The notes: a model not told the origin generated them from the letters alone. A stretch of 64,000 nt of DNA from Neoechinorhynchus agilis (GCA_051530055.1 CM121342.1:5517489-5581488), one strand, 5' to 3'; positions 890 to 55,299 are shown, counted from the first letter of the stretch. Program-made: numbers and translations.

Positions 890-1434
890 CTAGCAGAATT
901 TATCGATCACCAAACACGCAAATTCATCCTCAGACACTTCGGAATCCTCGATACGGCATTTCTGGTTCCATACGAAATTAAAGTTAGCTTTAATCAGTTC
1001 AATAGCTAACAAATGCTGACACAGCGGCTTAGATACCTTTCCCTTAGCGATCTGGGCATAGTCCTCACAAGTGCACATCCGACCACTTTGATCGTTCCAT
1101 ATACACGAATCATCATGTGTTTTAAAATTTAAATCATGCCATTCGTTCAAAACCAAATTGCTTGATTTACTCTTCAATCTTTTTAACAGTTTATTACGAT
1201 CTCGGCAAAGTTTTGCAGCTTGGTTCACGGTTTCACCTCCGTAGACTCTGTTCAATTGCGCTTCTCTCTCTCGGAGAGTGAGAGGCACAGTCTTCAATAC
1301 ATGACCATTAGACGCTCGGTCTCATTGCCGAGTCCCGGTGGATTACTGCTTTGTGTGGAAAAAATGATCTTTTCTAATCCAAGTCCCATAAATACGCTAC
1401 ATTTCCTCGGTCCTAACTCTGTATTATCGTCCAT
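890..1434 (-). CDS. ZSWIM7: SWIM zinc-finger protein, ZSWIM7/Sws1-like (2 exons inferred)
   Basis: CTCEDY...PLCQHLLAI fits the SWIM CxC..CxH pattern; small size. ATG at 1434 with a probable 38-nt phase-0 intron joining the ORF-track frame. Confidence 0.55.
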
Positions 1435-1529
1435 CAATGCGACTTCTCTGAAAATTTGGAATACAGAAAAAAATCAATGTGTGGTAAGGAACAGTCATTT
1501 TATCAATTCAATCGGTTTTTTAAAAACGG

Positions 1530-1845
1530 CCTAAATAACAGCATAATCCTAAAAGTCTTATCATACATTACGATCTCGTTTTCTATGCCTTTTACGGCGA
1601 ATCAGGTCCCTCTCCTATTGTTCCATAATGCCCAATCTTTTCTAGGATATCTTTACTCGAAATGAACCTGAAGTAAGACCAGCGTCCCGACCGCCAAATC
1701 CCTCTCAAACGGACTTTTCCCGACAAGATCTTCTCACTCAAACAATCAACATCCGCATTCTTTGAACAAATCTCTAATGAAGAAGACCCAAAAGAAGTAT
1801 GGGTAATATCCTTTTTGGATTAAGAACAAATAAACGTGTTTTTAA
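1530..1845 (+). mobile_element. Second degenerate LINE-like 3' remnant
   Basis: Shares CCATA-TGCC-AATCTT...GAAATGAACCTGA and the terminal GGATTAAGAA-AAATAAACGTGTT with the element at 49.7-50.6 kb. Confidence 0.35.
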
Positions 1846-1924
1846 CACGAACTAAAGAACAATATATCCTTTGCTTCGAATCTCCTTTTTTGGTTTTAAA
1901 AATAGATACTTGGCCGGCCTAAGA

Positions 1925-2350
1925 ATAATCAATTCAAAAATGGGCATATTTCATAGTTTATGTTTCGCGAGCTGGTTACATTTTTTGCGCAGTGGTTCAA
2001 AACTCACACCAAAAAGAGGGTGAGGGAAGTGTCCAGCGATGTCCTCCTCCTCCTCGCAACCGTATATTTCAGGGTTTTTAGGCGTGATTTTATGCTCTTC
2101 CCTCGCTCTTTTTAGTGTGAGTTTTGAACCCAAGAAATCAGCCGCGTAGATAATGTAATCAATTCAAAAATGGGCATATTTCTTAGTTAATTTTTCGCGA
2201 GCTGACTACATTTTTTGCGCAGTCGGCTGATTTCTTGGACTCAACAAAACTCACACCAAAAAGAGGGTGAGGGAAGCGTCCAGCGACGTTCTCGAGAGGT
2301 ATCTAAAAATCCGGAGGGATTCATACAAACTCGCAGCCGTATATTTCAGG
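1925..2350. repeat. Repeat family A, about 2 units, inverted relative to the 25.2-26.3 kb array
   Basis: Near-identical reverse complement of the 25.2-26.3 kb units (AAAAATGGGCATATTTC, TTCAAAACTCACACCAAAAAGAG). Confidence 0.9.
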
Positions 2351-2660
2351 GTTTTTAGGTTAATGTTCAAACATTTTTATCCTCTGTTGCCTCGCGTATT
2401 CAGCATTCCCTTCCTTAATGGTTTACTACTAACCATTTTCGAAGATTTCTACGGCACTTGTTGGGAAATTTAGACCTTTCAGTGGCCTGATTCTTAAACT
2501 TTCACAAAGATTCCAGATTTCGTTTATGAGAGGTATCCAAGGACCCGTTTTGTTATTATGATGCCGATTTCTCACATTCGGAATCGTATTAAGTAGCACT
2601 TTTACTAAAAAAAACTCATATTCAATTTGATTAAATGTGAAACAGCAACGAAACGCCCCG

Positions 2661-5600
2661 TTACAAATCTGCGGTTTTTGGCCTTTTCCACTTGTCGATA
2701 TTAAGCAAATTAATCTTTAGCACTTCCTTTTTAATTTTTCGTGCAGTTCGTCCTCTGCGATGTTCTTTAATGTCCGTGTGGACGAACAACGAAGACATTT
2801 CAACGACTTTTCCATATTTATCTCGTAGTTGAACATGTCTATATCCTGTTTTTAGAATAAAATCTTACATATTCGTCTATCAATGAAAATACCAGGTCGT
2901 ATCAGTTTCACAGGTATCGAACTTCCGCTAATAATCACATTTCTATTCGTTTTAACCATGAAATGGACCGCGGACATGTCTGGATCCTTGATATTGATGG
3001 TCTTTTTCCAATTCCACGTTGGATTTAGCAAGTTATCGTTCACGCAAGGACTACGGTAACTTCTTCTTTCATTCCTACTATGAATCATAATATCGACAAA
3101 AACGCCAGTGAACGACCCGAGTTCTTTGTCTCTAAGTCCCATTCGGATCAAATTTTGTCCACTAATGAGCTGATATACGGAGTGGCTTATTCGATAAGGA
3201 AAGAAAAAAGTACCGTAATTTTAAAGATGGTATACTTGCTATCGTTTAAATCCGGTTTAAGAACGTAACCACAACCACCATTGTCAATGAAAAAGCCGTG
3301 GTTGCAAGCCATTTCTATCCCTGATTTTTGAAAGTTCAACGCCACTTTTTCAAGTAACTTTTTTATATTGAAACACTCTTGACCAATGCTCACCGAGTTG
3401 AAATCCACTTAACCAACAACTATAAGGATCAAAATTAACCGAAGAAAGTCTCAGTCCGGATGGGTAGACTCTTAAGAGGTATTTAGAGGTGTATTCCCTG
3501 ACTTTCTCGGTTTCATCCATTAATACAAATGCTTTTATCTCTTCCAAAGACGATGATTGGTTTACGGGTCCTGTGTGAGATAAAAATACAGTTTCTTCAA
3601 ATAGAAATTAGCCTCACTTTGCTCGGCTTTCTCGTCTATCGCTTTTAGGAGACATGTTTGGAGATGGATAATGTCCGCGAATTCAGGAATAACCACCTTC
3701 AACTTTTAGTTATCACGTTTCTAATGAGAAAATTTTGCTTGAAGAGTTCTACATGGAACGTTGGATCACAATATGAGGGACAGTGAAAACAATGAGCTCT
3801 ATTTAGTTCAGGTCTAATAAAATAACCTTTGAATTGTCGAAATCCCTAAAAAGTCTTGTTCTTAACAATTTTTGGTACTAAAGTGCTAATCAAATAGAAC
3901 AACTTCAAGCAAAACTTCCAACGATTTTTCTACTTACTGAATTTCTTTTTGGTATCGCTCGCGACTATACATAGCCTTCGTTTTTACAGAGACTAAATTT
4001 TTTACTCTTACGCGAATTAGAACTTTATAGACCAACTGAGCTGGCGATGGAAGCTTATCCACACCTTTAAATAACTGCATTGGAGCAAGAGAATCTATAA
4101 TGGAAGTTTTAGATTGGTGATGCACTTCATTTGTGCTAGAAATGATTTGCTTTTTATTTTTTATAAGCGTAAAACTTCCGATATTTCACGTTAAATAATT
4201 CCGTCACAAATCTAGTCGATCAGATTAATTTATAATTGCACAACTTGATAATGTCGGACCGGCGTGAAATATCGAGGAAATAAATTAGCTAAAATCCGAC
4301 TCGGTGCAGAAAGCCAAACTTCGATAATCTAGTTGGGAACTTCATTTGTCTCGTAAAAATCTCCGAAGAAAAAGGAATTTAAGTATCTGTTACGATTATT
4401 TGGGTCTTACCTCCAAAGACTTCTTTAATTGTATTCACCATAATAATTTGCATTGGTGCTCCACATGAATTTTCAATGTTTAATATTAGTGGGTACCTGG
4501 CAAAACGATATCGTTGAAAATCTTTTCGACGTGTTTTTTCCTCGATTACTTTGAACAAGTAAATGCGTTTTTCTTTATTGTTTCCAGAGTGTCCTTCAAT
4601 CCGATTGCATAAGCCTCTGTCAAAGTCTTCTTATGAAATATTTCTGGTTCACCAAAAGCTCCATCGTGTACATCGACTGTGATAAAAGATGAACATTTTG
4701 AGAGTATCGAATGATAACTCACGTTCAACACAACGGCAACCCATTAGAAGTGCTCGAGTATAGGCTTCCAAACAGACTTCTCCAATGAGCTGATCATCGA
4801 GTAGGTACCTTAAACTCACGTCTTTAATTTTGTTCATAAGAATTCGCGATCCCACGTATTATGAGATGTATTAATAAAGTAAAAGCAAAGTGGCTTAGTC
4901 ATGTCCTGGTAGACGTTTGTCGTCTTCTTATAGTCTACGATACAATGGCGTTTATCGACCAAAAGCATTTCGATACCTAAATAAGAAACCGATCTTAATA
5001 TAAAAAACATGGACCATTTCCTGGACACTTACCGTGAAGTCCAATCGATCCACGCGCAATAAGTTCATCGTCCGTCTCAAATTCGTCAATCATTTGTCGA
5101 CACTCAGCAATCGTGTACTCATCCTGTTAGTAAAAAAAGCATCTCCAAAATGAAAACTTAAAGGAATACCGTTAAAACATTCCTTATAAATGAAGCGAGT
5201 TCAATTGCATTGAGTCCTCTTTCAGTCATTGGAGAATACCTTTACACATACAACAAATGAAGAATTCAATGGCGCAAACCATGCTATTACCTTCGAACCA
5301 ATTCAGCTATGTCCTCTCGATGGGTCATTCTCTCGAAAAGAGCGAAAAATCCATTGCGATCAATAGATTTACTACGGTCGTCCAACTAAACATTCACCAA
5401 AAAATCAATCATGAAACCGCTCGTTAAAACCCGTTTTTCGAATAAAAACTCACTAATTGATCTTAAAACACAAATGACACTAAGAAGATCTAAAAATGAG
5501 ATTCACTCAAACAGCGACAAATGTAACTTGATTGCTTTTTAGCTACAAAAACCCTTCATAAAGCAAGCTAATCTTTTTTTGCCCCATTTTAAAACATATT

Positions 5601-6699: not shown

Positions 6700-7417
6700 G
6701 CAACGGTAGCGAAAACGAACCTTCTTCAAAGTCCCCTGAGCGACCGCTGGATATCTCGGATTCGTCAAGTCTTTTCGACCTGATCGCGTGATCTCGGATC
6801 CGATTCCTTGGAGATCCACATTGTCCACGGCAAAAACTAAAAGTTGAGATGATGGCAACGATTGAAGGTTGCAGCCATCGCCCAAGTCCATGTTTCCGTT
6901 GATTCTGGATCACCGCTGAGGATCCAGAAAAGTGCCTCCGGGCAACGGTCGCGAAAACGAACCCCCTTCAAAGTCCCCTGAGCGACCGCTGGATATCTCG
7001 GATTCGTCAAGTCTTTTCGACCTGATCGCGTGATCTCGGATCCGATTCCTTGGAGATCCACATTGTCCATGGCAAAAACTAAAAGTTGAGATGATGGCAA
7101 CGATTGAAGGTTGCAGCCATCGCCCAAGTCCAAGTCTCCGTTGATTCTGGATCACCGTTGAGGATCCAGAAAAGTGCCGCCTGGAAACGGAAGCGACAAC
7201 GAACCCCCTTCAAAAGTACCTTGAGCGACCGCTGGATATCTCGGATTCGTCAAGTTTTTTCGACCTGATCGCTTGATCTCGGATCCGATTCCTTGGAGAT
7301 CCACATTGTCCATGGCAAAAACTAAAAGTTGAGATGATGGCAAGAATTGAAGGTTGCAGTCATCGCTCGAGTCCAAGTCTCCGTTGATTCTGGATCATCG
7401 TTGAGGATCCAGAAAAG
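6700..7417. repeat. Tandem array, 242-243 bp unit, about 3 copies
   Basis: CGACCGCTGGATATCTCGG recurs at 6741, 6983 and 7226. The minus-strand translation contains ITRSGRK..PRY, a motif common after LTR-retrotransposon integrases. Confidence 0.9.
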
Positions 7418-8607: not shown

Positions 8608-8752
8608 CAGAAAAAAACAATCTATATCAACAAATCATAAATTTTTACCTCTTTTTATCACAATTACCGGCGTTTCCTTGACGGGGAAGTTCGTGTCAAA
8701 AATCGATGAGTTTACTCCTCCGCTCTCTCCCCCCCCCTCAAATCGCCCTCAG

Positions 8753-9489: not shown

Positions 9490-10145
9490 TGACGAAATAC
9501 CCCGTGTTGAAGGGAGAACTCACTGATGAGTCCCTCCGCCTTCTCGGAGGTATCTGAGAATCCTGAGGGATTCTTACAAAAACTTATAACCGTCTACGGT
9601 CTTGGGGGCATTGAGCACGGACCAGCATCGTCCCAGACCAATGAATCGGCGATGGACTGTGAGTGTCCATTTGGCCGTGTTTGGATGTTGGGTCAAAGGG
9701 TTCGAATCCACGGTCGCCAAAGGGAGAACAATCAAAAGGAGACGAAATACCCCGTGTTGAAGGGAGAACTCACTGATGAGTATCTCCTCCGGACGAGGAT
9801 GTACAAACTTATAACCGTCTACGGTCTTGGGGGGCATTGAGCACGGACCAGCACCGTCCCAGACCAATGAATCGGCGATGGACTGTGAGTGTCCATTTGG
9901 CCGTGTTTGGATGTTGGGTCAAAGGGTTCGAATCCACGGTCGCCAAAGGGAGAACAATCAAAAGGAGACGAAATACCCCGTGTTGAAGGGAGAACTCACT
10001 GATGAGTATCTCCTCCTCGGAGGTATCTGAGAATCCTGAGGGATTCTTACAAAAACTTATAACCGTCTACGGTCTTTGGACATTGAGCACCGCCCCAGAC
10101 CAATGAATCGGCGATTGGACTGCGGGTGTCCATTTGGCCGTGTAT
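9490..10145. repeat. Repeat family B, 227-249 bp units, about 2.7 copies, followed by smaller duplications to about 10320
   Basis: GACGAAATACCCCGTGTTGAAGGGAGAACTCACTGATGAG recurs at about 9491, 9740 and 9967. Confidence 0.9.
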
Positions 10146-10596
10146 GGAAAGGATCTTAAACATATTCATCTCGAAAGTTTTTTAAATAAATCTTTAAGGG
10201 ATCACATCAATGAGTTTCCTCCCAGAAAATAATAGACGAGTTGTATGCGGTGTTAGTCTTAATCTCGAAGGTTTTTCAAATAAATCTTTAAGGGATCACA
10301 TCAATGAGTTTCCTCCTAGGAAATAATTCTATGTTTTGTGTAAAACGAGGTATGACGGCATTCTTGAACTCAACTTGGAAATATAGAGATCTACTTGGAG
10401 TAACGCTTTATGAAATCTTACAACGACGAATTTAATTTGCCGCAATCTCAAGAGCGACTGTTGATAGAGTTTTCATTAACGGATATTATCCGGTGAGAAT
10501 CAAAGTATCTAAGGAACTTTGTACTTTCTTATAAGCCATTATGTTTTTATCGCTCTACATTTACATTGTAATTTTATTTTTCAATCGGCACGAATC

Positions 10597-10720
10597 TTTT
10601 GTGCCGAACTCGGACGACGACTTGCAGCACAAACAGGGGAGCGAGAGGATTTTCCTGATCCAAAGAATAAGCCTCGCAATCCAACGAGGAAATGCGGTCA
10701 GCGTCCGGGGGACGATTTAA
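10597..10720 (+). mobile_element. C-terminal fragment of a CRE-like (RLE) non-LTR retrotransposon
   Basis: FCAELGRRLAAQTGERE (frameshift) LIQRISLAIQRGNAVSVRGTI*, homologous to the longer copy at 43.9-44.3 kb. Confidence 0.65.
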
Positions 10721-11473
10721 TCATCAACCAAATAAAAACTCGAGATTTGAAAAAAAATTTAAGAGTATTTGTTTCACCTTTAAATAGTCGATGGGATGAA
10801 ATAATTTTCATTTTGATGAAACAAGTTTAAATATCGGATATTAACTTTATCTTAATAATCATATAGGTTTTCAGGGAAGTTCAAATTGTTTGATATGTCG
10901 CGCATAGAGGAGAAATGTTAAGCTTTCGTATGCAAAAAGCTAAAAGTTGGGTTTTTGTAGGTTTTAATCGAAAAACCAGCGTTAGTTTACATTAAAATCC
11001 AATTTAATTCTTCTTGTTCTCCTATATTTCCCATTGAACACCGTAAAAATCCTCGTCTACTCGTTTCAAAGTATCTTTTTTTGCAAAGTTATCGCGTTTT
11101 TCATCTTTTATTCACTGGAATAAGCTTTGATTTGTTTTCCCCTTCACTTGCGTCCGGAGACTAATTTGAAATTTCATGGAGAATTGTATATTTATTTGGC
11201 GAGGATCTCAAAATCCAACAGCAAACAACTGCAGCATAGATCTGATCCTTCTCTCTAGATAAGGAAAACTTGAAATCAACGCTCAATATTTCGGTTTCCC
11301 TCAAATTCTGCATTTGTTCGTCAATTTCCTAAGCTCACATTGTTTCTCCTCAGCGAGGACCTCTTTTTGCCCTAATAAAAAACGCCAACGTACTCACTAA
11401 CGTCTTGCTCGTATTTCGCCCGTGTTTGTTTTATAGCAATTTTAGTTTAAAAAAACCCACCGATATTTCGAAG

Positions 11474-14400
11474 ATGATGTCCACTAATTCTGCTGATGAA
11501 GTAGGCCTATTTCCCCCGTCGTACTTCGCACTTCTTTGTTCAAGGCGTCCTCAGAATGCGATGAGTACCGAAATCCTAAATGGAATTCTACAGCATCCGG
11601 ACACGACAGCCCGACTTAGTCTTTTAAAGGCCCAGCTTTGTGGAGGTTGGGTTTACTCAGGATATTCCCGTTGTTGTTCATCAGACGACTTAGACGAAGC
11701 CTTTGTTAGTCTGAGTGGATGTGGATCTATGGAGTCCAGTGTTCAAAAGCGACCTCGATCGCAGTGTATTTCCTTCATTGACAATGTCTTTTGCGCGTTC
11801 GTTGATCGACTAGCGAACGAGAAACAAATTTGTGGTAAGGTATGGGGACCGCAGGAGCCCGGCTATCGGTGTCATAGCTGTGAAATGAGTCAATTCGCTT
11901 GTCTTTGCACAAGTTGCTTCAATCAAGGAAACCATTTCCAACACGACTACACTGTATTTCATTCACCAGTCGGAGGTGTTTGCGATTGTGGAGATGATAT
12001 TGCCTTCAAATCAGGAACGTTTTGTGCAAAACACGTCGTCGTGAGAAATCAGGAGTCTTCTAAGTTATCCGAACATGAGATGAATGCTTCACTCTTAACA
12101 GCAAAACCATTGTTGGCCATTTTAATGGAACGCATAGTTTGGAATCTTAGAATCATGCACTATTTTGATCTTAGCGATCACGAAGCTTCAATTGTAACGC
12201 TGAATCAAGAGTATGTGGTGTTCAAGGTCGCAAAGGAACTTGGACCAAACTGTATTCCGTCTTGGTACAATTCGGATTTTCTTGAGAAACTTCACCACGG
12301 TTATTGTCTAAACGCAGCAAATCTAAGCACCTCTACCGTTCTACAACACATTATAAAGCCGTGGTTCCGATGAGTTTTGTGGGTCATTCTAGTCGAGTTT
12401 CTTTAAATAGCCCATTTTAAAACCCCTCAAAAAGTCGTGCCACAAAAATAGTCCTTCGAAATTCGTTTTAAGGTTTCTAAGGACCCATGACAAGAGACAA
12501 ATACATTTCCCAATTCCAATCAAACGAATCTGAAATTGTGTTACTTTGTTGCCTGGAAATGAACGATTTGCTATTGAACTTTATATCAACGATTGCAAAG
12601 GACAGTTCTATTCTTGCGAAGGTGATATTGGATACCATGAATAGCAAGAGTGTTAGTTCGTTGGTTCCGCATTTGCTTGTAGATCGCATAGCTCGAACAA
12701 CGGGTCAAGTGACTCGATCCATCTCGAAATCCCATCTTTGTGGAACAGTACTAACCGAGTTCGTGTTCTGGTGCTGTATTACAAGATACCGAAACAATCT
12801 TAAGATGGTGCTGATCACTCTTGCTCTTCATCAGTGCAATAAGAAATCTCTGATCAAGGAGTACCTGGCAACCTATAGCCTCGCAAGTCGCATTCTTCAC
12901 ACAAGCCATGACATTGCAATGATGAACCGGATGATCCACTTCAGTGTAGCCATCTACTGCGACTTTTCACATTTCCACGATACAATGATATACTCCCAAA
13001 TGATCGGAACACTTCTAAACAGTCTTTGGATATCTCCTATTGAATGCGAGAACGGCTTAGTTGCTTGTCCAGTGCGATACGATTCTCGATCTAATAAAGA
13101 TAAAGTGATTGACTCTACTACTCATATGGTCCTTAACCATCTTCACCCTATGATTGAACTCTACTTAAGTTGGCAGGCATCCACTGAGATCATGATCGCC
13201 GTTTGCCATAAGACGGCGGTTGAGGTATTTATAAGCCAACCGAGATTGTTTGGAATGTGGCTGGACGTTGTGACTAGATTGCAAGGAATGACTTACCTTC
13301 GGGAATCCGACTTAAGTGAATCCTCCGACTCGTCGCATACCGTCATTGATGGACTATCGACAACTGAGTCGAAGGTATCAATGACTGAACTTCATGTTTG
13401 TGGAAGTATTCTTGGATCAGTGGCTAGGACCATTAAGCGAAGTATCAGTAACGAAGAAGCGGCGATCGCTAATAACGGTTTCAGTATCCGAAATGATGAT
13501 ACTTTAAGCAAATCGGTCGATATGTTATTCACGACGAACACACAAGGAGTTTTGTCTTTTAGAATGTGTTCATCGTTATGTGAAATGTTTAGCAGAGTCA
13601 TTTGAATTCGTTCGCCCCCCCCCGAGATCAATTAGATCTTTAATCTTTGAAAGAGTTTTTAAGCATACATAATTTATAGTTTCTTCAACGATCCCATTCA
13701 TCGGCGCTGGCCAATTTTTGGGCGAGGAACGAAGTCGATCTTGGATCTCCAGTCGCCGCGTTGATTCGTTTCCCCAAGTCCTTCAGGAGGAGGGCCAAGG
13801 TACGTTTCCACACCGAAGGGGACAAAATGGTAATTTCGGATTAGCTCAATTTTCGAGATTAAATCGTTAACTTATTACAAAAACCATGTAATTTCGGGTT
13901 TTCTTTGGATTCAAATGACTTTGTGATTTACTTACCAGTAATCCAATCAACCCAGCAGTTTTGTTGTCTAACATCTTGCAGGTCCTAAATAACCTTGGCT
14001 CTTGGTTCAACAACGTCGGTCTAACATGCAATCTTATTTCATCACACGAATCAGCTCGCATAGCAAATGTGAATCTTGACCTCTCAGTGACATTCCAACT
14101 CCCTCTACACCGAATCCTCTCAAATTTCTTATTTATTTTGATAGATCGCTTTCGGTTCTCGGCGAACCAGATATTTAAAGTCGTCCAAACACAAATGCAT
14201 GCGGCCACACGACTCCTGGAACTGATCATCGTTCATCCAGTTCAACTCCAGTACGCAATATCCCGATCCGAATCGAATCCCACAGTCAGTCAAAAGCATC
14301 GAAGAAGTTCTCTACTGTACATGTGCACGAAATCATTTGCTGGATCGCCATCGATTGATCGTGATCGATTTCTCATTCAAGCACTCTGTTCAACGCTCCC

Positions 14401-17400
14401 AACTGACATTGTCATGTACACTTTATTGAGAAGATTTCGAGTATTTGGCGATTACTTTGAAAAACCCGGTGACTTGATCGAATACTTTAACGAATTGAAC
14501 AATGACGACTCACGCTTTTCATCGCGAATCCATTGTGAATTGCTTGAATCACTGATGTGTTTTATCGCTCAATTGCTGGCTGTTAGTATCTCACTGGATC
14601 CAATGGATCCAGAAACGCTGACAAAAGAAGCCATTGCAATTTTATGCATTGAAAACAAATCGTTTTCGGAAATAGAGAACTCATTACCTGCATACACACG
14701 AAACTCACGATGCAGAACCATTCTGTGCTCGGTGATTAAATCGATTGCGGAATTCATTCCACCTGAAATCGTTGATGGGAAACCTCGTCCTGGATACTTT
14801 AGGCTCAATGACAACAGTCGATATTTCGATCCCCTTTTCGTTATGTACCGAAGTATTCTCAGACCTGAATGGTATCTGAAAGCAATGGCTCATTATGTGA
14901 AATGGATTAGGAAAGTGAGACCGGATATCCCGGAATCTGTTCTTAGGAAACTATGGCCTCCACTTTGCACCCAAAACGTGAATACGGACTGTAACAGACT
15001 TGTAGAATCTCGATTCCTCCATCAATTCATCTATCTTCTTCTTCGATCGTATTTGAAATGTGATAAGATTGGCGAACGTACACTCAATTTCTGTGTGTAC
15101 TTGCTAAGAATTGGTCTAGAATCAAAGATAACTCGTGACAATGAAGAACCGTCCTTAAAATGTATCTATAAAACGAATGATTTATCGACTAATGTATTTA
15201 TGCCCGTTAAAGATTTAATGTTTACCGAATCTTCACATGAGCGATGTTCTGAGCCAACTTGTATACGATGCAAAGCAAACAAGTCTACAAAAATAGAAGT
15301 GTTTGATGCAAACAACGATTTAAAAGAAACCAGCATTGCAAGTTTTCTTATTGAAATTCTAAATAAAGACAGTCAACATGGAACAACCAAGGCCGTTCTC
15401 AGATTATCGGACCGACAACGCGTCCTAAAGCTCATCGAAAGTGAGCATCTTATTGAAATTGAGAATGGAATTTGTGTTGGAACGGAAATTGCGCACATTG
15501 CAACTCTACTAAGACTTATTCGTAAACTCGGAGAGAGTCAATTTCAGTATTGGCTTAGTCAATTATCTGACAAACCCGTACCTAAGACTTCGATTGTGGC
15601 CGAAAATGCCATCAAGGATAAGATAAGAGAAGAGTTTATTAAAAAACAACTCCAGTTCGCTCAAACCGTCGTTGGGCCAATTGTGAACAATGTTAACGGC
15701 GAATTCGATCGATATTGTGTCATTTGCCGCGAGGATTGCTCAGATCTACCACTGGGACTTGTTTCTTACAACCAACGAACAGACGTGGCTTCGAGGCAAT
15801 TCGTCAGTTTAACTCCAAGGGATAATCAGGAATACGACTGTGTAGACACGGCCTACGCTAAATTATTGCAAGATTTCACAAAAAACGCGGTTTTACTGCG
15901 AGTTCTCAGTGAAGATTTGAAGCTCAAATTGGCCAAATTCGCTACCCTGAGACTAAAAACGCTTAGTTCAAATGAGGAGTATTCAAAAAAGTCAGAATCC
16001 TCAATCGACGTCGGCATCCATGAAACCGCATTTAATTCAACGGAAATCACCGTTACAGATGGATCTTTGGTGACAACACAAACGTTGAAAGTAGAAAATG
16101 ACAGTTCGGCGATCGATACTACCGAAAATCTTTCAAATGATCACGCGGAACATGATGATAATCCAGTGAAAGGTCAAAAAGTGGCTCATTTGTCAAATGC
16201 AAACTTCAACGATTACAATTATTTTCAATCCTGTGGCCATTTTGCTCATCTAAAATGTATAAGTGGTCATTCCGATGGACTTACGGATTTTGAGTGCCCC
16301 GTCTGTCGAAGACGATGCAACTCCATTATTCCTATGATAGGCAAGAGTCTCGAACACAAATCCAAGGAAATTGCATTGGATTTTGTAGATCGCGCTATGC
16401 CTAATATTCATTGGAATGATATGAGTTTTGTAGAGTTTTTAAGAGCTCAACTGGAATCAGATTTATTGGGAGATTTTAGAAGAAGGTCGTATAAATCAAC
16501 GAGGATTATAGGAGAATGTGTTAATATTTTCCGAAGTCTTCTTAATCGACAATCGGTACATTTCAATTATTTATTGTCTAGTCTGGAGTTGCGCTCGTCG
16601 TTGGAGTCATCTTATATCCCGATTCTCTTCTACGACCCATTGATAGTAATGATTAATTTGATTCTGTTTGGAACAAAATCTCCATCCGAAACACTCGATG
16701 AGAATGTTCAGTCTGTGTTTGAACTTAGCTTATCTCAAGCGATGATTGCGATTTCATTGGCGGGTAATAGAAATGAAGTGGATACTTGCGATGAGGTGAG
16801 CCGATGTCTCGAAAGGATCACTACCGAGCTCAAAAGTTGTGGATTTCCGATCAAGGAATCACTACGAAAACCGATCAACCTCAAACATATAATGATGGTT
16901 CTTCAACATAAAATAGTGAGGGGTTTAGCTTTCCTAAGGCTTTCAATTATGGACCCGACGAATCCACCATCTTCAATTGTTTATTTAATTAATAAGTCGA
17001 ACACCATTGATCAGACCGATCAGCCGATTGAATCATTTGCAGAATTATGTGAATGGATTGGTGTGAATGAAACAGAGGCGTGGGACGGAGACAAACTAAG
17101 CGTTAAATGCAGATTTTGGATTGATCAAGTTTTTGAAGGGCGACACGATGCGTCCATGTACTACACTCTGATTGGTGCAGTTTGTAATTTTGAAGGATTT
17201 GCATGTCGAACTCTTCTTCAACCGAATTTAATGCCTCTTCCTGCACGTCTAAATACTCTTCACAAACAAGTGGCTTTATTCACTTGTCCTGACTGCCGTT
17301 CGATGCCCTTTACGAATCATCTTAAATATCGACCGGATGATATTAAGGTTTGCCTTCTATGCTCCATTGCGTACGCTTCTTCAGGCAGTGATTGTGCGGA

Positions 17401-17701
17401 AATCACGTGCTGTGAGAAAATAAGGCGAAAATGGGCAATGCATTCAAGAACTGGGTTGTGTAATAATAAACATTTAGGCTTAGAGATGAACTTAAGGAAT
17501 TCGATTGTCAGAATTTATGGAAACGATGGATCTTCATATGAATGGGGTGGACTCTATCTGGACGAAAATGGAGAAGAAGATGTGGAATTAGGAAGGGGAA
17601 GACCACTTATTTTGAACGAAAAAAGATTTATGTACTTGCAAGAACACTGGATTAATGTTACACTCAATGCTACTTCATCGACGACTACTGATGATGGTTG
17701 A
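11474..17701 (+). CDS. UBR3: UBR3-type E3 ubiquitin ligase (UBR box plus split RING-H2), two inferred introns
   Basis: UBR box CGKVWGPQEPGYRCHSC...CDCGD; TEFVFWC...NRMIHFSV; VTFQLPLHR; CVIC...CGHFAHLKC...CPVCR; C-terminal YLDENGEEDVELGRGRPL. Confidence 0.9.
13695..13832 (-). mobile_element. CRE-like RLE fragment inside the second UBR3 intron
   Basis: Minus strand reads FVPFGVETYLGP..LLKDLGKRINAATGDPRSTSFLAQK; near-identical to 54213-54370. Confidence 0.7.
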
Positions 17702-22334: not shown

Positions 22335-22355
22335 CGGTCTGAAACAAAAATCCAA

Positions 22356-22824: not shown

Positions 22825-22940
22825 GCGCGACTTTAAAAGATCCACATTCGCGGTTTCTTCCACGGACGATTCAGATCCTCTCTGATTCTCTAGCGCGCAG
22901 TGCCTCAAATTCGTCCCAGCGCTTCATTTTAGACAAACGA

Positions 22941-35015: not shown

Positions 35016-35478
35016 ATAGCGACGAGACACATCATAAAAAACAGACATTTTGCATAGTGATTTTGCGAATCGACATTTTCGAAATGAGTAGTTCGGGCCA
35101 AATGAATTAAATAGAACTCACAAAAGACCAAGAAAAAGTTATTGGTCCGATCCAATTTGAAAAACACAAGTCAATCCAATTAATGAGAGCGAGAAACTAC
35201 GACTCTTTCCCATTGTCCAATTAAAGAAATTCTCGATTTTTCAGCTTTCGGTTAAAGTGGAAACTATTCATAGTTGTTTGTAGTCCGTGAGAAGCAAAAC
35301 ACACTCAAGAGACTATAGGGCGCTCCTTTATCGTTCCTTCTATTGAATCATCAGTAGGAAAAGAAAAGATTGAGTCATCTTTTTTTTGGTGGCACCAAGT
35401 ATTTTTAGAACGAAGCTAAAATGTGGGCAATGAAAGTTCGCTAGCAAACAAAACACCACATTCTCTTTCAGATTATTA

Positions 35479-36174
35479 ATGACCGAATCATTGTCCGAAT
35501 CGTCAAGTGGCATTGAGCACATACCACTCACTAACCTTCAGCATCTACTCCTCACGATTGGGTCCGGTGCAGTTTGCCTTCTAAATCCAACTCGCGGCAA
35601 TATGATAGCCACTTTTGGCGAAGTCACTGGTCAACGAGCCCTGAAATCGATTCGGCAAAGAATGATGGAAGACGACAATGGCCGTAAAATCCTCGAAGAA
35701 AAACCTTTGATAACATCGAAGACAGTAGATCTGGATTTGTTATCTCAACTACCACCCGAAACATTCGGCAACCATTATTTCCAATTTTTGAAAAATTACA
35801 ATTACTCTCCTGATGAGCGACGAGCGGTCTATTTTGTAGATGATCCGGAACTGGCGTACGTGATGCTCCGTTATAGACAACTTCATGATTTAACTCATGT
35901 AATTCTTGGGCAACCGACTAATCTTCTGGGAGAGATCGTAGTAAAAAGATTTGAAGCTACTCAATACGCTCTTCCAATGTGCATTCTTGGCTCGACTTTC
36001 GCATCTTGGAGACTTGGACCCAAACATTCTGCAAAATATTTGAATCAATATCTTCCTTGGGTGATCCAGACCGCCAAAAGAGCCCGGCTATTTATTAATT
36101 GCAAATTCGAAGATCATTGGACCACTCCTATTGACAAACTCCGAAGAAGCCTTAGAGTTAAAATGTTAGATTGA
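35479..36174 (+). CDS. COQ4: Ubiquinone biosynthesis protein COQ4, intronless as seen
   Basis: NPTRGNMIATFGEVTG, LPPETFG, YVMLRYRQLHDLTH, GEIVVKRFE (HDxxH..E motif). Confidence 0.95.
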   Translation: MTESLSESSSGIEHIPLTNLQHLLLTIGSGAVCLLNPTRGNMIATFGEVTGQRALKSIRQRMMEDDNGRKILEEKPLITSKTVDLDLLSQLPPETFGNHYFQFLKNYNYSPDERRAVYFVDDPELAYVMLRYRQLHDLTHVILGQPTNLLGEIVVKRFEATQYALPMCILGSTFASWRLGPKHSAKYLNQYLPWVIQTAKRARLFINCKFEDHWTTPIDKLRRSLRVKMLD

Positions 36175-46333: not shown

Positions 46334-47817
46334 TCAATACTCTTTATCTTCGCCATCATCGTCATCTACGGAATCCAGCCCAACTTCCTCATAATCCTTT
46401 TCCAATGCAGCCAAATCTTCTCTTGCCTCTTGAAACTCTCCTTCCTCCATTCCTTCACCGACATACCAATGAACAAATGCCCGTTTTGCATACATTAAAT
46501 CAAACTTATGATCCAATCGAGCCCATGCTTCAGCAATGGCGGTTGTGTTGGACAACATACAAACGGCACGGGGTACTTTAGCCATATCGCTACCGGGCAC
46601 AACAGTCATAGGCTGATAATTGATTCCCACTTTAAACCCCGTCGGACACCAATCCACAAACTGTATAGCTCGTTTGGTCTTAATAGTGGCGATGGCGGCA
46701 TTAACGTCCTTAGGAACCACATCTCCTCGGAAAAGAAGACAGCATGCCATGTACTTGCCATGTCTTGGATCACATTTTACCATTTGATTGGCCGGGTCGA
46801 ACACTGAACTCGTAATTTCGGCTACACTCATTTGTTCATGAAGCGCTTTCTCGGCCGAAATTATGGGAGCGTAGGTCGCTAGAGGAAAATGGATTCTTGG
46901 ATAAGGGACGAGGTTTGTTTGAAATTCAGTGAGATCGACGTTCAATGCGCCGTCAAATCTTAGACTTGCCGTGATTGAACTCACAATCTGGGCTATGAGT
47001 CTATTAAGACTCGTGTAAGAAGGACGTTCAATGTCGAGATTCTTTCTACAGATATCATAGATCGCTTCATTGTCTACCATGAATGCGCAATCCGAATGTT
47101 CAAGGGTCGTATGAGTCGTCAGAATTGAATTGTAGGGTTCAACTACGGCCGTTGCAATTTGGGGTGCTGGATAGACGGCGAATTCGAGTTTTGACTTTTT
47201 TCCGTAGTCATCGCTGAGTTTTTCCATCAAAAGAGCAGTAAATCCTGATCCTGTTCCACCTCCGAATGAATGAAAGATAAGAAATCCCTGAAGGCCGGTG
47301 CACTGATCGGACAATTTTCGAATTTTGTCCAGTGATTCGTCAATGATTTGATGACCGATAGTGTAGTGTCCTCTAGCGTAGTTGTTGGCAGCATCTTCTT
47401 TATCATTGATGAGTTGTTCTGGATGATAGAGCTGTTTGTATGGGCCAACTCTGATTTCGTCTATCAAATGGGCGATGTGAGAGAAAGAGAGAGGGAAAGA
47501 GCAATTAACCGATTACAGTTGGTTCGAGGTCCACGAAAAGTGCTCTCGGGACGTGTTTTCCCGTTCCGGTATGATTAAAGAAAGTATTGAAACTTTCGTC
47601 TTTCAACACCGGCGGACTATTGGTTGCCATGTGTCCATTTTGTCCGATTCCATGCTCAAGGCAATACAACTCCCAGCACGAGTTTCCGATCTGGGCTCCA
47701 GCCTGTCCGATGTGAATACTGATGCACTCCCTCTAAAAAAAGTAATAATAGACCTGATCAAAATACTCTCTTACCAATCGCCTCATACTAACAAATTTCT
47801 CTCCAAGGACTTACCAT
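46334..47817 (-). CDS. TUBA: Alpha-tubulin, 2 introns, ambiguous first exon
   Basis: [39 protein letters not shown]-terminal EY. Confidence 0.98.
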
Positions 47818-48766: not shown

Positions 48767-51286
48767 TTAAATAGAAACGCGAGTGATTTGAACATCTCCA
48801 ATATCTTCGTATTCCTTCTTTAGTTTTTCAAGTTCGACGCTCAAGTTTGCCAATTCGTCTCGCCTGTAAAACTCTTTGCTTTTAGCTTCAATATCTTTCT
48901 TGCAAGCTTCCTTCTTTTCCTCAATGCTTAGTCGGCTTCTCTCAAACATTTCGATGGTATCAAAATACTTTTGGTCCAACTCAACAACTGGACCAGGTAA
49001 ACGGGCCTTAAAATCGAGCCCAAGCAGTTTTGTAATGTTGCATAAGGAATCGTAGTTTGACTCACGGAGCTGGTTAAGCAACTTGTCTCTTTCTTCTACT
49101 AAAGACTTCAGATATCTGTAATTGTTTCTTCTCTTTGAACAAAGAAATTTAGTGACAAAATAAAAGAGTTAAAAAGACTCACGTGTTTATATTTCACGTA
49201 GTCGTGGTGTCTTAAAGGAAGAGTGTGGTCGAAATCAAAGATTTATAAGAATAAAAACGTCTGTATTTCAATTAAAGATTCAGATTTTTAAAATTGGGGT
49301 TGCGCGGAGAAGCTAAACATTTATAAAGGGCTGAAGAAAAACTGAACTATTGCCTTTAATTGTGTCTAGTGGACAAATGCAACCTTATCGAGACGCCAAA
49401 GATTGTTGTTATTTGAAGATTGAATTGTTCATGTTTGGCATGTAAAAAATAAAAGAATTTTTAATTGAATCCGATTGATTTCAACACCCTTGATAAAAAA
49501 ACTTACAAGAAACCTACGCCATTTAAAAAAACAAATTATTGTTGTGTCACATCAAAAACAAATCCTTCGGGATGGTAAATATTGAATGGTGGTGATGGAA
49601 TAAAACACATTAACAATGACTGATGAGGCGAGGTTTCCTCTTTCGAAATATTTCATAATAATAAAGGAACCTCTATTCCTTTCATCGTCCCCCCCCTCTT
49701 CATTTTTCCATACTTTCAAATCTTCTCCGATATCAGAACTTGAAATGAACCTGAGGAAAGATTCAAACCTCATAAACTCTCCTTCGTACGATAACCACCA
49801 ACTTTCACATTCATTTAACCTCTCATTTCGTTCAAGTGTTCACGAAGACTCAGATTTAGATGGTTCCTCTACTTTTAACAATAAAACGTATTATAATCCC
49901 AATTCATTTCATCTTCCTCTACTTCCGCTCCTTTTTCCATACTGCCAAATCTTCTCCGATATCAGAACTTGAAATGAACCTGAGGAAAGATTCAAACCTC
50001 ATAAACTCTCCTTCGTACGATAACCACCAACTTTCACATTCATTTAACCTCTCATTTCGTTCAAGTGTTCACGAAGACTCAGATTTAGATGGCTCCTCTA
50101 CTTTTAGCAATAAAACGTATTATAATCCCAATTCTTTTCATCTTCCTCTACTTCCGCTCCTTTTTCCATACTGCCAAATCTTCTCCGATATCAGAACTTG
50201 AAATGAACCTGAGGAAAGATTCAAACCTCATAAACTCTCCTTCGTACGATAACCACCAACTTTCACATTCATTTAACCCCTCATTTCGTTCAAGTGTTCA
50301 CGAAGACTCAGATTTAGATGGCTCCTCTACTTTTAGCAATAAAACGTATTATAATCCCAATTCTTTTCATCTTCCTCTACTTCCACTCCTTTTTCCATAC
50401 TGCCAAATCTTCTCCGATATCAGAACTTGAAATGTACCTGAGGAAAGATTCAAACCTCATAAACTCTTCTAAAAACAATACTCGACTGAACCTTCCAACC
50501 CGACCGGACTCGTAATTCTACTCCAAAATCAACAACGGATTCATTGACCAAATCCGAAATCGAATGTTAATGAGGACGCAAATGTTGGATTAAGAAATAA
50601 ACGTGTTATTATTACTAAACTGAGATTATATTCAAAAACTGTTGAAAAGATTGTTGTGTTATATAAACGTTCGGCTAAGATAACCCGATTGGACCGCGCA
50701 AATTTTAGCTGAATGTTCCTTATTAATTAAAAACGTTCTCCCTTTCGACCACTACACCTCTTTACCCGAATATCAGCAGTCAGACAAACAACTAAATAGT
50801 TTCCAATTGGAGAAATAAGGTAAGAATATTCAGAAAAGACTCACTTTTATGCTCAATTGAATTTGGTTTACGTTGCAGACCACAAAACCGGCTGAATAAC
50901 GTTTCTCTGTACGAATTCATTATATTTCCCTAATTTTTGAGACCAATACAAAATTGGTGGCTCACATTCACTTACCGATCGATTGTAAGCCAAACTGCAT
51001 AACCTCTTTACGTTCGCGGAAGCACTAATCACCATTATTGATCGTTAAAATCAAATAAAAAAGCTCACTTTTGAAAAGATTGGCTCTTGTCGCAGTCATT
51101 AATGAACGTGTGGTCTACATCGATACCGTTGAAGCGTTCCGTATCAACTAATAATAGTAAGTGAAATGAACCAAAAAAGAGAGAATACTGACTAAGATCG
51201 ATTTGTCTAACCGGACGAGGCATTCTTGCGGTGGCAGACCTCCTCTGCCTTAGAAGGAAAACTAACTGTTTATTGACCCGAAGCAT
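48767..51286 (-). CDS. MRPS15: Mitochondrial ribosomal protein uS15m, 7 exons
   Basis: Presequence MLRVNKQLVFLLRQRR; NVKRLCSL; SIEHK|IVCLTADIR; YLKSLVEERDKLLNQLRESNYD; exon phases are consistent. Confidence 0.7.
49703..50470. repeat. 229-bp tandem repeat (about 3.3 copies) of LINE-like 3' sequence, inside the MRPS15 intron
   Basis: TCTTCTCCGATATCAGAAC at 49721, 49950, 50179 and 50408. Confidence 0.92.
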
Positions 51287-51441
51287 CGTCCCTATCTAAA
51301 AGCGACAAATTCGAAGATCCATCGAGTCTGACTGCGAGGACTAACCGTTAACAACTTGAGTTTCGAAACCACAAACGATTCCAGGGGTCTCAGAGGACTA
51401 ATGCTTTGTTTCTGCGTTCTTTCGTATCATTAATCGAACAA

Positions 51442-52611
51442 ATGTATTCCTGCGACAAAATAAATCGCTTGCAGTACAACGAAACAGAGCTGCTAGCGAC
51501 AGCCGAGGAAGGAGAGAAGCTAAGATTTTGCGGACGGTGGTGATTGCACGTTTTGTACTTTATTATTGTAAAACTTATTAAATTCGTCTTTGCGTCAAAA
51601 AATACGTCGCCACCGTGACGTGTTCTACTTTCTGTTTTTTAACATGTTTGAACATTGAACTAATTCTGATGCTTGTTTATAGTGGGTAAAAAATTAAAAG
51701 AATTTTGGTGGAATCCGATTGATTTTGGAGGCAAGAAACCTTGTGATTGTGCCTCCGAAATTAAATTCTTTTAGTTTTTATGTTTAATGTTAACGTTCGC
51801 CCTATTGTCCCGGTTTGCGTCCCGGTAAATAGAGATCCGGGCATAAAATCAATGAACTATTTGAAATTAGTGGACACTTTTCAATTTTCACATCAAGAAC
51901 AAATCCTTCAGGATGGAAAATATTGAATGGTAGTGGTGAACATATAATCCTGGTGATTAAAGATTCCTTTATTAAATTTATTTCGCTAGTAAGCATCTCG
52001 TCTCATTCAAAAAATGAGTATTTGTGATCCCAAGTTTTCCAAATAGAAAGAATACATTTGAGATTTAATCAGAGTTTATTAGCACTAAATGCTTTGCTAG
52101 AATAATTCCGCTCATTGATTTTAATAAAACTGAAGTTGGGGATATGCTGCCTACCATGGTGTTGGCCTTGGCTCAAACAGGATGTCGCGAACGAACCGGA
52201 ATTATATACGACCACCACGACCACCACCACGACCACCACCACGACCACGACCACCACGACCACCACCACGACCACCACCACCACGACCACCACCACCACG
52301 ACCACGACCACCACGACCACGACCACCACGACCACCACGACCACCACCACCACGACCACCACGACCACCACGACCACCACCACGACCACCACCACGACCA
52401 CGACCACGACCACCACCACGACCACGACCACGACCACCACGACCACGACCACCACCACGACCACGACCACGACCACCACGACCACGACCACGACCACCAC
52501 GACCACACCACGACCACCACGACCACGACCACGACCACCACCACGACCACGACCACGACCACGACCACCACCACGACCACGACCACGACCACGACAACCA
52601 CCACGATCACC

Positions 52612-52652
<41 letters not shown>

Positions 52653-52737
52653 CACCACGACCACCACCACCACCACGACCACCAATAGCTGTATCATCCT
52701 TTATTTTCCTTTCAAATTACACATAAAGGTGCACTAG
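51442..52737 (+). CDS. Putative 2-exon protein ending in His/Asp-rich then poly-Thr tracts
   Basis: Open frame 51352-51540, and an open frame from 52069 running into the repeat; phase-2 junction 51537 GT..AG 52082. No homology recognised. Confidence 0.35.
52208..52683. repeat. Mosaic (CAC/GAC)n triplet repeat, about 475 bp
   Basis: Almost only CAC and GAC triplets; one 1-nt slip at about 52505. Confidence 0.97.
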
Positions 52738-53436: not shown

Positions 53437-53969
53437 GGAGATTGTGGGTATTGAGGAGCTTAGAGATCGCTCTCAAACTCAACTCCTTCTCTCGCCTATT
53501 CTTCATTTAGGATTCAGCAGACTCTCAAGCAACTAAATTTTATCCGTCTAACAGTACAAAAGTTTGCATGTGAAATAAACACAATAAAAAAGTGGTCGTT
53601 TACTAGTCTTATTTAGCAAAATGACCGAAAAGGACAAAGAGAAATGTATGATTCTCAATGAGGGAGATTGTGGGTATTGAGGAGCTTAGAAATCGCTCTC
53701 AAACTCAACTCCTTCTCTCGCCTATTCTTCATTTGGAATTCAGCAGACTCTCAAGCAACTAAATTTTATCCGTCTAACAGTACAAAAGTTTGCATGTGAA
53801 ATAAACACAATAAAAAAGTGGTCGTTTACTGGTCTTATTTAGCAAAATGACCAAGAAGGACAAAGAGAAATGTATGATTCTCAATGAGGGAGATTGTGGG
53901 TATTGAGGAGCTTAGAAATCGCTCTCAAACTCAACTCCTTCTCTCGCCTATTCTTCATTTAGGATTCAG
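53437..53969. repeat. 226-bp tandem repeat, about 2.4 copies
   Basis: GGAGATTGTGGGTATTGAGGAGC at 53437, 53663 and 53889. Confidence 0.92.
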
Positions 53970-54040
53970 AAGAGTCGAACTCTCACATAAATAAAACCAA
54001 ATTGTAAAACTGTTCATCATTTTAACCTTTTTGTAACGAA

Positions 54041-54174
54041 TTATCAAATAATTGATATATTTGATAATTTTAGGCCTTTGCGTAGGCCTTTTTCAAATTT
54101 TTTTTGCAAAACAGTAGACTTAAGAAGGCCTACGCGAAAACCGAAAATTATCAAATAAATCAATTATTTGATAA
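54041..54174. repeat. MITE-like hairpin with about 50-bp imperfect arms
   Basis: TTATCAAATAATTGAT..TTTGATAATTTT..GCGTAGGCCTT versus AAGGCCTACGC..AAAATTATCAAAT..CAATTATTTGATAA. Confidence 0.75.
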
Positions 54175-54212
54175 AAGTAAATAAAACCATAGTCAACTTA
54201 CCCAAGAAAAAA

Positions 54213-54370
54213 GTGAAACGTATGGGGCCTTGTGAGGGTCGGCACTGGCCCCCCTCCTGAAGGACTTGGGGAAACGAATCAACGCGGCGACTGGAGATCC
54301 AAGATCGACTTCGTTCCTCGCCCAAAAATTAGGAATGCGGCCAGCATTTTGGCCAGCGCCGATGAATAGG
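54213..54370 (+). mobile_element. CRE-like RLE C-terminal fragment
   Basis: ETYGAL*..PLLKDLGKRINAATGDPRSTSFLAQK; near-identical to 13695-13832. Confidence 0.7.
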
Positions 54371-54602
54371 AGCGGGGAGGTTAGATCAAAAAAATCCCTC
54401 AATAACTCTCAAGTACATTAATTTTGTTTCAAATTCGAGTATTCATGAAAATCCAAAGATGCATTGTTCCTTTTGTTTGTTAATTTTTTTAGTAATATTC
54501 TCCAATTTGAAATGGTTTTGTGTGTTGGTGTGGAGGGATGCGGAACAGAAAGCTTCTCTAAGTTTATTGACAAAATATATATGCACAAATCGAGTGACTG
54601 GA

Positions 54603-55181
54603 TCACAATATACAAAGAAGAGTTGATATAATTATCCGGCGGAAGGTATGTTCACTCCTTACCTGAATTGCTTCGTTTTTCTCTAGATATTCTCCGTTAC
54701 AAAGCATGCTATCGCACTCCTTTTCATACTCCACTTCGTACTGTAAAACAGATCCTCGTGGCTTTGAAGCTCGTCGATACCTTCCATAGCCATGTTTATC
54801 ATTATCGTTTTGATTGCGTCCACCCATCAATAGCAAATCCACAAGCTTCTGCTGTTTGTCTTCTAGTATAAACTTGCTAGTCGGAGCACAGCTCCTAACG
54901 AACCTTCTTTCTTTTGACAGTTTGTTTTTGAGAATATAAAATATACAATATGATCGATGATTTGTGTGGCCAGACGTTCGAGTCATTAGTTCGGTGCAAT
55001 TGACAATATCAAGATCAGAAGTGCGATAAGCACATGGATCGTCGATGAAGTTCAACTTCGATCCAGCAATAACGGTGTCGCAACTGTAACATATTAGGTC
55101 CGGTCTCGGCTCAACGATAGAGATTTGGTTCAGGGAGTGTTTGGTCAAAGTGACGAGCAACATTAAATGAAGGAGCTTCAT
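54603..55181 (-). CDS. Secreted, probably GPI-anchored Ly6/uPAR (quiver-like) three-finger protein
   Basis: Signal peptide, LICYSCD, spaced Cys, ECDSMLCN end motif, hydrophobic C-terminus. Confidence 0.75.
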   Translation of the reverse strand: MKLLHLMLLVTLTKHSLNQISIVEPRPDLICYSCDTVIAGSKLNFIDDPCAYRTSDLDIVNCTELMTRTSGHTNHRSYCIFYILKNKLSKERRFVRSCAPTSKFILEDKQQKLVDLLLMGGRNQNDNDKHGYGRYRRASKPRGSVLQYEVEYEKECDSMLCNGEYLEKNEAIQVRSEHTFRRIIISTLLCIL

Positions 55182-55299
55182 TAACGACTAACCATTGCTT
55201 AGGACTTGTCTAAAAATCAAGAGAGGGATGTATTAAGGTTTCCTTATACTTTAGAACACTCAATGGGAAATCTCGACACGGTCAAGAGTCTGTATTTTG

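Follow-up and report, generated by a model that had tools for sequence, protein, structure and literature searches.

Acceptor-like motifs ahead of start codons suggest spliced-leader trans-splicing in the acanthocephalan Neoechinorhynchus agilis

Why should about half of the genes in a stretch of the Neoechinorhynchus agilis genome carry a T-rich motif ending in AG within a few nucleotides (nt) of the start codon? The question is raised by a single 64-kb window of chromosome CM121342.1 (GCA_051530055.1; BioProject PRJNA1126620), the whole of which was analysed here and whose base 1 is record base 5,517,489. It concerns spliced-leader (SL) trans-splicing, a process that is patchily distributed in animals and for which single and multiple origins are debated. 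Acanthocephalans nest within Rotifera/Syndermata; if messenger RNAs (mRNAs) of N. agilis are trans-spliced, a gap in this clade would be filled, with consequences for the question of an ancestral origin in Syndermata/Gnathifera. Below, we show that the motif is enriched ahead of genuine start codons in a position-specific manner, and we argue that the TTTYAG motifs before about half of the starts are probably acceptors for SL trans-splicing.

Enrichment of the motif before start codons

Start codons for the main test were those of the 22 GenBank gene calls in the window, chosen independently of the original prediction, which had drawn attention to acceptor-like motifs just before most starts. 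With distance counted as the number of nt between the end of the motif and the ATG, and with TTT[CT]AG taken as the strict motif, a strict motif ended 0 to 30 nt upstream of 7 of the 22 annotated starts, against an expectation of 3.5% (binomial p = 7e-6), and the predicted enrichment over background is thereby borne out. At the same starts, the motif was found in 0/22 cases between −31 and −61, in 0/22 between −62 and −92, and in 1/22 in the antisense control; across all 2060 ATGs of the window, 3.9% have a strict motif upstream. Removal of two doubtful genes, g113 and g186, leaves 6 of 20 starts with the motif (p = 5e-5). Around 22 curated starts, a positional histogram placed 11 motifs in the bin from −29 to 0 and no more than 2 in any of the other 30-nt bins between −300 and +120, and the reverse-complement motif gave no peak. 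Taken together, these counts show a motif that is enriched, position-specific and located ahead of genuine start codons, with a 3' acceptor-like site shortly upstream of the true start in many genes, whether annotated or curated starts are considered.

All 13 acceptor-like sites on which the original prediction was built were found in the sequence at the distances it gave (Table 1). In GINS2, SRSF2, DCPS and DNAJA3, the motif ends 0, 0, 2 and 4 nt before the ATG, respectively, which leaves nearly no 5' untranslated region (5'UTR) unless a leader is added. Three starts are fixed by homology: residue 1 of N. agilis GINS2 aligns with residue 1 of human PSF2, residue 2 of MTA aligns with residue 2 of MTA1, and the N-terminus of U2AF1 is identical in P. 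laevis over 15 residues. Hence, the AGs at 0, −8 and −21 of these genes lie in leader DNA and not before an internal exon. No motif precedes the starts of alpha-tubulin, myosin V, PLC and others; alpha-tubulin, which serves as the contrast case in Table 1, has TATAAA 32 nt 5' of its ATG and no T-rich acceptor ahead of it.

Trans-splicing and its alternatives

The motif has the form of a splice acceptor, namely a pyrimidine tract, a YAG and a following A. For comparison with cis acceptors, junctions were anchored on conserved peptides (taken from PDB alignments in the case of myosin V and from known motifs of the respective families in the others), and only GT-AG pairs that restored conserved sequence were accepted as introns. 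We relied on these homology-anchored junctions because ab initio exon-chaining, guided by exact product length, coding potential and site matrices, over-split or skipped exons and lost the zinc finger of U2AF1; the anchored junctions gave U2AF1 exons that match the GenBank protein at 100%. The resulting 35 cis introns have a median length of 49 nt (range 43–545), with 26 of the 35 between 43 and 56 nt (e.g., 27474–27518, 39274–39318 and 3345–3393). As the original prediction held, they mostly end in TAG or AAG, with 19 TAG (54%), 10 AAG (29%) and 6 CAG (17%), and their pyrimidine tract is weak; some of the AAG ends follow pure A runs (CAAAAAAAAG in U2AF1 intron 1). An AAG share of 10/35 is unusually high for an animal. 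The single long cis intron, U2AF1 intron 4 (27978–28522, 545 nt), holds a short ORF-like unit (ORF, open reading frame) in several diverged copies and so contains a repeat or insertion.

The sites before start codons differ from these introns on every count, in figures that are partly circular and inflated because the pre-ATG sites were picked via their motif: the 14 pre-ATG sites have TAG, AAG and CAG ends in the proportion 7/0/7 versus 19/10/6 (p = 0.03 for CAG) and include no AAG or GAG end, the strict TTTYAG occurs in 11/14 versus 4/35 (Fisher p = 1e-5), the pyrimidine fraction from −23 to −4 is 0.66 versus 0.57 (p = 0.007), and an A follows the AG in 79% (11/14) versus 37% (p = 0.012). 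The pyrimidine fraction across all AGs is 0.49, and the second base after the AG is a pyrimidine in 13 of the 14 pre-ATG sites. The suggestion that acceptors for trans and cis splicing are distinct thus stands as a description, its numerical contrast being too large. An unbiased form of the comparison asks only how often the strict motif should appear if a cis-type acceptor lay near every ATG; even then, 7 strict motifs at 22 starts are unexpected (p = 0.009).

From this pattern, we infer splicing at these AGs, its occurrence in trans and the existence of a leader. Under SL trans-splicing, TTTYAG(A) at 0–28 nt before about half of the starts would act as the 3' splice acceptor of a primary transcript that begins further upstream, with an outron devoid of its own 5' splice site. 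The spliceosome would link a short capped leader, supplied by a separate SL RNA, to the AG, and the mature mRNA would consist of the leader, 0–28 nt and the AUG. Because intron definition finds no donor in an outron, trans-acceptors would need a strong U2AF-type site (a U-tract and YAG), while the 49-nt cis introns would manage with weak UAG or AAG ends.

The same reaction may also separate neighbouring genes. YIPF5 and SRSF2, both on the minus strand, are separated by a 77-nt spacer (29811–29887) between the YIPF5 stop codon (29890–29888) and the SRSF2 ATG (29810). The spacer, TAG-agagAATAGTttcaaaattctttcttcttttg...cgaTTTCAG-ATG, contains AATAGT, then a U-rich stretch and then the TTTCAG that abuts the ATG. 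With two genes on one strand, a gap of about 100 nt or less and an acceptor ahead of the downstream start, YIPF5-SRSF2 is a putative operon-like pair, the only one as tight in 64 kb, and its two-gene precursor would be cut into two mRNAs in the manner of an operon. Most genes in the window have AATAAA 7–55 nt past the stop, and AATAGT is the only poly(A)-type signal of YIPF5. Given that U2AF1 and SRSF2 have AATAGA instead, YIPF5 may have its poly(A) signal in AATAGT, which is suggestive and not decisive. A looser case is DCPS, which follows BAP31 on the same strand; the 380 nt that separate it from the BAP31 stop contain three AATAAA. A search for YIPF5 homologues returned no P. laevis protein and only a Metaclust fragment that comes without a contig.

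Several observations weigh against trans-splicing at these sites. About 22 genes from a single 64-kb window make up the sample. GenBank uses the YIPF5 AG in cis and reads through the motifs of COQ4 and UBR3. Introns longer than 200 nt may supply donors for the pre-ATG AGs, and one cis intron of 545 nt exists. The sequence TTTYAGAY also fits the metazoan initiator consensus, YYANWYY. The COQ4 start of P. laevis lacks a strict motif in the preceding 30 nt; a weak TTGTAG at −31 is the only candidate there and uninformative. An SL RNA gene comprises a leader exon, a GT donor and an Sm site (AAUUUUGG-like). An Rfam scan of the window found no SL RNA at the gathering threshold or at E<=5, and the leader known from bdelloid rotifers, GGCUUAUUACAACUUACCAAGAG, had 0 matches in the window at up to 3 mismatches; absence of an SL RNA from the window is weak evidence, because SL genes usually lie elsewhere. 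Searches with COQ4, U2AF1 and YIPF5 returned only GenBank genome proteins and no acanthocephalan transcript in the searchable collections. Finally, no SL was detected in an expressed sequence tag (EST) study of a monogonont rotifer (PMC1925144), which makes the distribution of the trait patchy even inside this clade.

The exact COQ4 ORF was absent from the records searched. Two sets of matches from the transcript searches were considered and set aside: a 59%-identical "ena" fragment of COQ4, which comes from ENA metagenome assemblies, one of them labelled marine (PRJEB4352), and 68%-identical U2AF1 contigs, which are environmental, genome-like and without the rotifer leader. Full-text searching of the accessible literature turned up nothing that deals with Acanthocephala, Seisonidea or "Syndermata" in connection with SL trans-splicing, and neither the N. 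agilis genome/transcriptome paper nor the rotiferan-parasite paper mentions trans-splicing, spliced leaders or operons.

In the strongest alternative, no leader is involved: each AG would be an ordinary cis acceptor and would pair with a GT donor further upstream, either within a 5'UTR or at the end of a coding exon that has gone unrecognised. For BAP31 this is very probably so: as the original prediction expected of this gene (BCAP31), a GTGAGT donor defines an ordinary 5'UTR intron that ends shortly before the ATG (Table 1), and by this counter-example a pre-ATG AG need not be a trans-acceptor. MRPS15 may be another such case, because a good GTTAGT donor (score 8.3) stands 50 nt upstream. 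Donors at 130–173 nt from the AGs of DCPS and YIPF5 score above the median of true donors, and GenBank splices the YIPF5 AG to an unconserved upstream exon (31059–30904) across a 290-nt intron; the YIPF5 and MRPS15 AGs are thus possibly cis. The alpha-tubulin intron, placed right after the ATG, demonstrates that splicing near start codons occurs in this genome. P. laevis has long introns, and the TTTACAG/ATG that adjoins the conserved start of its U2AF1 gene could be a cis site. As a set, however, the pre-ATG AGs show no donor signal beyond that of random AGs. In a donor matrix built from the 35 introns, true donors have a median of 6.5 bits (leave-one-out), and the best GT located 35–200 nt upstream of the 14 pre-ATG AGs has a median of 4.8, compared with 5.3 for 2000 random AGs (one-sided p = 0.90), in a test whose power is limited because the donor consensus is weak. 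No plausible donor lies within 200 nt of the U2AF1, SRSF2, g113 and UBR3 sites: U2AF1 has no GT at all from 35 to 110 nt upstream of its AG, and the best donor of SRSF2, which has just 77 nt to the upstream stop, scores 1.6. The short median length of the cis introns and the rarity of TTTYAG among them also speak against cis splicing. For single sites, long 5'UTR cis introns are the leading alternative; the set as a whole is poorly explained by them, and we regard them as an unlikely explanation of the motif.

We give somewhat less credence still to the idea that TTTYAGAY is an initiator-like core-promoter element, with transcription starting from the A of the AG, very short 5'UTRs and no splicing there. 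The motif resembles such an element in its match to YYANWYY, which includes the A and pyrimidine after the AG, and in lying close upstream of the coding region. Moreover, Ly6 has TATAAG about 39 nt upstream of its AG, the TATAAA so near the alpha-tubulin ATG hints at very short leaders in this genome, and the motif is unlike the bulk of the cis acceptors. Leaders of 2–6 nt are, however, poor substrates for cap-dependent scanning in animals, and that is what the sites at 0, 0, 2 and 4 nt would yield. An initiator has no need of the extended pyrimidine tract found at most sites, and the SRSF2 promoter would have to fit into a 77-nt 3'UTR spacer. The same hexamer serves as a cis acceptor in 4 introns of the window, and in bdelloids, which do trans-splice, the motif follows poly(A) signals at 50–148 nt from upstream stops. 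That the pattern arose by chance or through the choice of start codons (spurious ORFs, or an internal cis acceptor whose next ATG was taken for the start) is very improbable: there are doubtful genes (ORF 31286, g113 and g186), unverified ones (ZSWIM7 and MRPS15) and clear GenBank errors at the 5' ends of tubulin, COQ4 and UBR3, but the enrichment survives the use of annotation-derived starts and the removal of doubtful genes, the starts of U2AF1, GINS2 and MTA are fixed by homology, and the flanking and antisense controls are empty or nearly so.

SL trans-splicing is therefore the reading we prefer. The claim that this animal trans-splices most of its housekeeping mRNAs is the best-supported account of the motifs, except that "most" is too strong, with about half of the starts having a motif and BAP31 being cis. 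A broader version, in which about half of acanthocephalan mRNAs are trans-spliced, some polycistronic units are resolved and two acceptor codes coexist, a strong UUUYAG/A for the leader and a degenerate UAG/AAG, nearly devoid of a pyrimidine tract, for the cis introns of about 49 nt, is conceivable but in our judgement doubtful. Were the AGs to act as trans-acceptors, the assembly would contain many wrongly predicted N-termini, and the quantification of expression from the existing N. agilis RNA-seq data (74 libraries; PMC12690905) would be affected. A parasite-specific leader could also provide a diagnostic or knock-down handle.

Gene models and other features of the window

The window is densely populated, with about 22–24 genes in 64 kb. 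The reading frames of COQ4, U2AF1 and YIPF5 are 100% matches to GenBank proteins of N. agilis. Pfam and PDB matches identify PLC, GINS2/PSF2, a UBR-box ligase, DNAJA3, MTA, U2AF1, an SRSF2-like RRM protein, YIPF5, BAP31, DcpS, COQ4, myosin V, an MFS transporter, alpha-tubulin and a Ly6/uPAR-like protein. A Pfam search of the small ORFs (ZSWIM7, MRPS15, g125, g155, g113 and ORF 31286) gave 0 matches, and the labels ZSWIM7 and MRPS15, which come from the original prediction, are without support.

Table 1. Motifs ahead of start codons, with two cis introns for contrast; distance is in nt from the end of the motif or intron to the ATG
Gene	Motif or element	Position	Strand	ATG	Distance
ZSWIM7 (name from the original prediction; small ORF)	TTTTCAG	1448–1454	−	1434	−13
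GINS2/PSF2	Long C/T tract (8716–8752) ending CCCTCAG	8746–8752	+	8753	0
UBR3 (UBR-box E3 ligase)	TTTTAG	11440–11445	+	11474	−28
DNAJA3	TTTCAG after T-rich tract	22339–22344	−	22334	−4
MTA	TTTTAG	22927–22932	+	22941	−8
U2AF1	TTTCAG	27403–27408	+	27430	−21
SRSF2	TTTCAG	29811–29816	−	29810	0
YIPF5	TTTCAG	30614–30619	−	30592	−21
ORF 31286	CTTCAG	31290–31295	−	31286	−3
DCPS	TTTCTAG	33069–33075	+	33078	−2
COQ4	TTTCAG after C/T tract	35466–35471	+	35479	−7
MRPS15 (name from the original prediction; annotated 123-aa gene)	TTTTAG	51296–51301	−	51286	−9
g186 (doubtful gene; added here)	TTTTAG	51769–51774	+	51787 (annotated)	−12
Ly6/uPAR-like	TTTTAG after C/T tract	55210–55215	−	55181	−28
BAP31 (probable cis)	GTGAGT intron, 70 nt, ending CTCCTCAG	31809–31878	+	31901	−22
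Alpha-tubulin (contrast case)	ATG, then GTAAGT cis intron, 82 nt, ending TTTTTTAG	47733–47817	−	47817–47815	

The GenBank models are unreliable at 5' ends, as is evident from tubulin, COQ4 and UBR3. The alpha-tubulin model (46334–47817, minus strand) begins at 47786 and yields MRRL-RECISIH, a non-canonical N-terminus, whereas the canonical MRECISIH is obtained from the ATG at 47817 followed by the immediate GTAAGT intron. The COQ4 model (35084–36174, plus strand) translates across the TTTCAG and thereby gains 32 residues that are not in P. laevis. The UBR-box ligase (10410–17701, plus strand) is divided into three genes of 336, 372 and 1256 amino acids (aa), and its start is uncertain, GenBank adding upstream exons from 10410. 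At the Ly6 locus, a short upstream ATG lies between the TTTTAG and the ATG listed, and DNAJA3 and MTA are divergent genes, with 593 nt between their two motifs.

Three small genes call for caution. An additional pre-ATG site was found before g113, an annotated "gene" of 113 aa that lies, together with this site, inside a 229-bp tandem repeat. The g186 product (186 aa) is of low complexity, Pro/Arg-rich and His/Asp-rich, and the body of the gene is a hexamer repeat with an ACCACC array of 79 copies (52211–52684). Both are doubtful as genes because they are repeat-borne, and neither was among the sites of the original prediction. ORF 31286, with 58 codons and no known domain, is likewise doubtful.

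Repeats are frequent in the window. A satellite-like array at 59066–61908 comprises 16.9 copies of a 168-bp unit that are 97% identical, and tandem repeats of 216–242 bp, with 2–3 copies each, occupy 49703–50467, 6700–7417, 53437–53973, 9580–10016 and 25192–25883. The first of these holds g113 three times, and the second contains repeated ORFs, each behind a TTTTAG, 8 nt and an ATG. The acceptor motif of U2AF1 is preceded, at a distance of about 70 nt, by the end of an 81-bp tandem repeat (27121–27339; 2.7 copies with 97% identity), which may belong to the promoter or outron of that gene. A direct repeat of about 120 nt (31385–31620; gaagttttgttcgatgtcttcatttttcttgtta...aaatcaccaaagaac) lies in the intergenic region between the divergent YIPF5 and BAP31. 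Long hairpin-forming stretches on the plus strand at 54050–54164, 25439–25581 and 25662–25787 gave sub-threshold Rfam matches to models of microRNA precursors from plants and insects, namely MIR4239 (43 bits against a gathering threshold of 100) and mir-988; they are more likely inverted-repeat elements than microRNAs.

Comparison with relatives and known systems

In favour of trans-splicing, the signature recurs in P. laevis, in which TTTACAG abuts the ATG of U2AF1. Among known systems, the bdelloid rotifers offer the closest parallel. In Adineta and Philodina, a 23-nt leader, GGCUUAUUACAACUUACCAAGAG, is carried by at least 50% of mRNAs, according to the passages of PMC1925144 and PMC3795323 that cite Pouchkina-Stantcheva and Tunnacliffe (2005). 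Bdelloids belong to the same clade as N. agilis and trans-splice a similar share of genes, about half. Their loci also share the N. agilis genomic signature, with a T-rich YAG 3–21 nt before starts, including those of genes 50–148 nt behind an upstream stop. At the syntenic U2AF1 locus of Adineta vaga and Rotaria spp., TTTCTAG stands at −7/−8 of Grx, 106–148 nt after the U2AF1 stop; NAAA of Rotaria has TTCTAG at −3, 50 nt after a transketolase-like gene, with AATAAA and then a C/T tract between; and the RING gene has TTTCAG at −21 in Adineta only. HSP20 of Adineta, which is TATA-rich upstream, has no YAG within 30 nt, and in Rotaria this gene is preceded only by a weak ATCTAG at −2. In the small Adineta sample, the strict motif precedes 2 of 7 starts, where 2.3% are expected. 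Tight same-strand pairs (L015 20591–20642; L009 11749–11855), of which U2AF1-Grx is conserved between Adineta and Rotaria, have an acceptor motif before the downstream start and look like operons, and no rotifer operons had been reported as of 2021 (PMC7986045). The difference is that the bdelloid leader is documented, whereas N. agilis is known here from its genomic signature, in a window that does not contain the bdelloid leader.

SL1 outrons of Caenorhabditis elegans end in a UUUYAG acceptor a few nt before the AUG, often abutting it, and have no 5' splice site. The position of the acceptor is alike in N. agilis, and the YIPF5-SRSF2 spacer, with its poly(A)-signal-like AATAGT, its run rich in U and its acceptor about 70 nt further on, resembles an intercistronic region of about 100 nt. 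The two systems differ in that C. elegans has SL2 operons, compared with one tight pair in 64 kb of N. agilis, and in that its cis and trans acceptors follow one consensus, whereas the cis acceptors of N. agilis are mostly UAG or AAG behind a weak pyrimidine tract. Should the doubtful two-code reading prove right, N. agilis would provide a natural system in which recognition of trans-acceptors is separated from that of cis-acceptors.

Within Gnathifera, chaetognaths trans-splice about half of their genes, favouring housekeeping ones, and have 18% of genes in operons with gaps of <250 bp (PMC12460157, PMC2481426). There, trans-splicing has been demonstrated by RNA-seq and involves several leaders, in contrast to the genomic signature of N. 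agilis, and the authors argue for an independent origin (PMC12460157, PMC2481426). Under the same two-code reading, trans-splicing would be ancestral to bdelloids and acanthocephalans and perhaps to Gnathifera, chaetognaths included.

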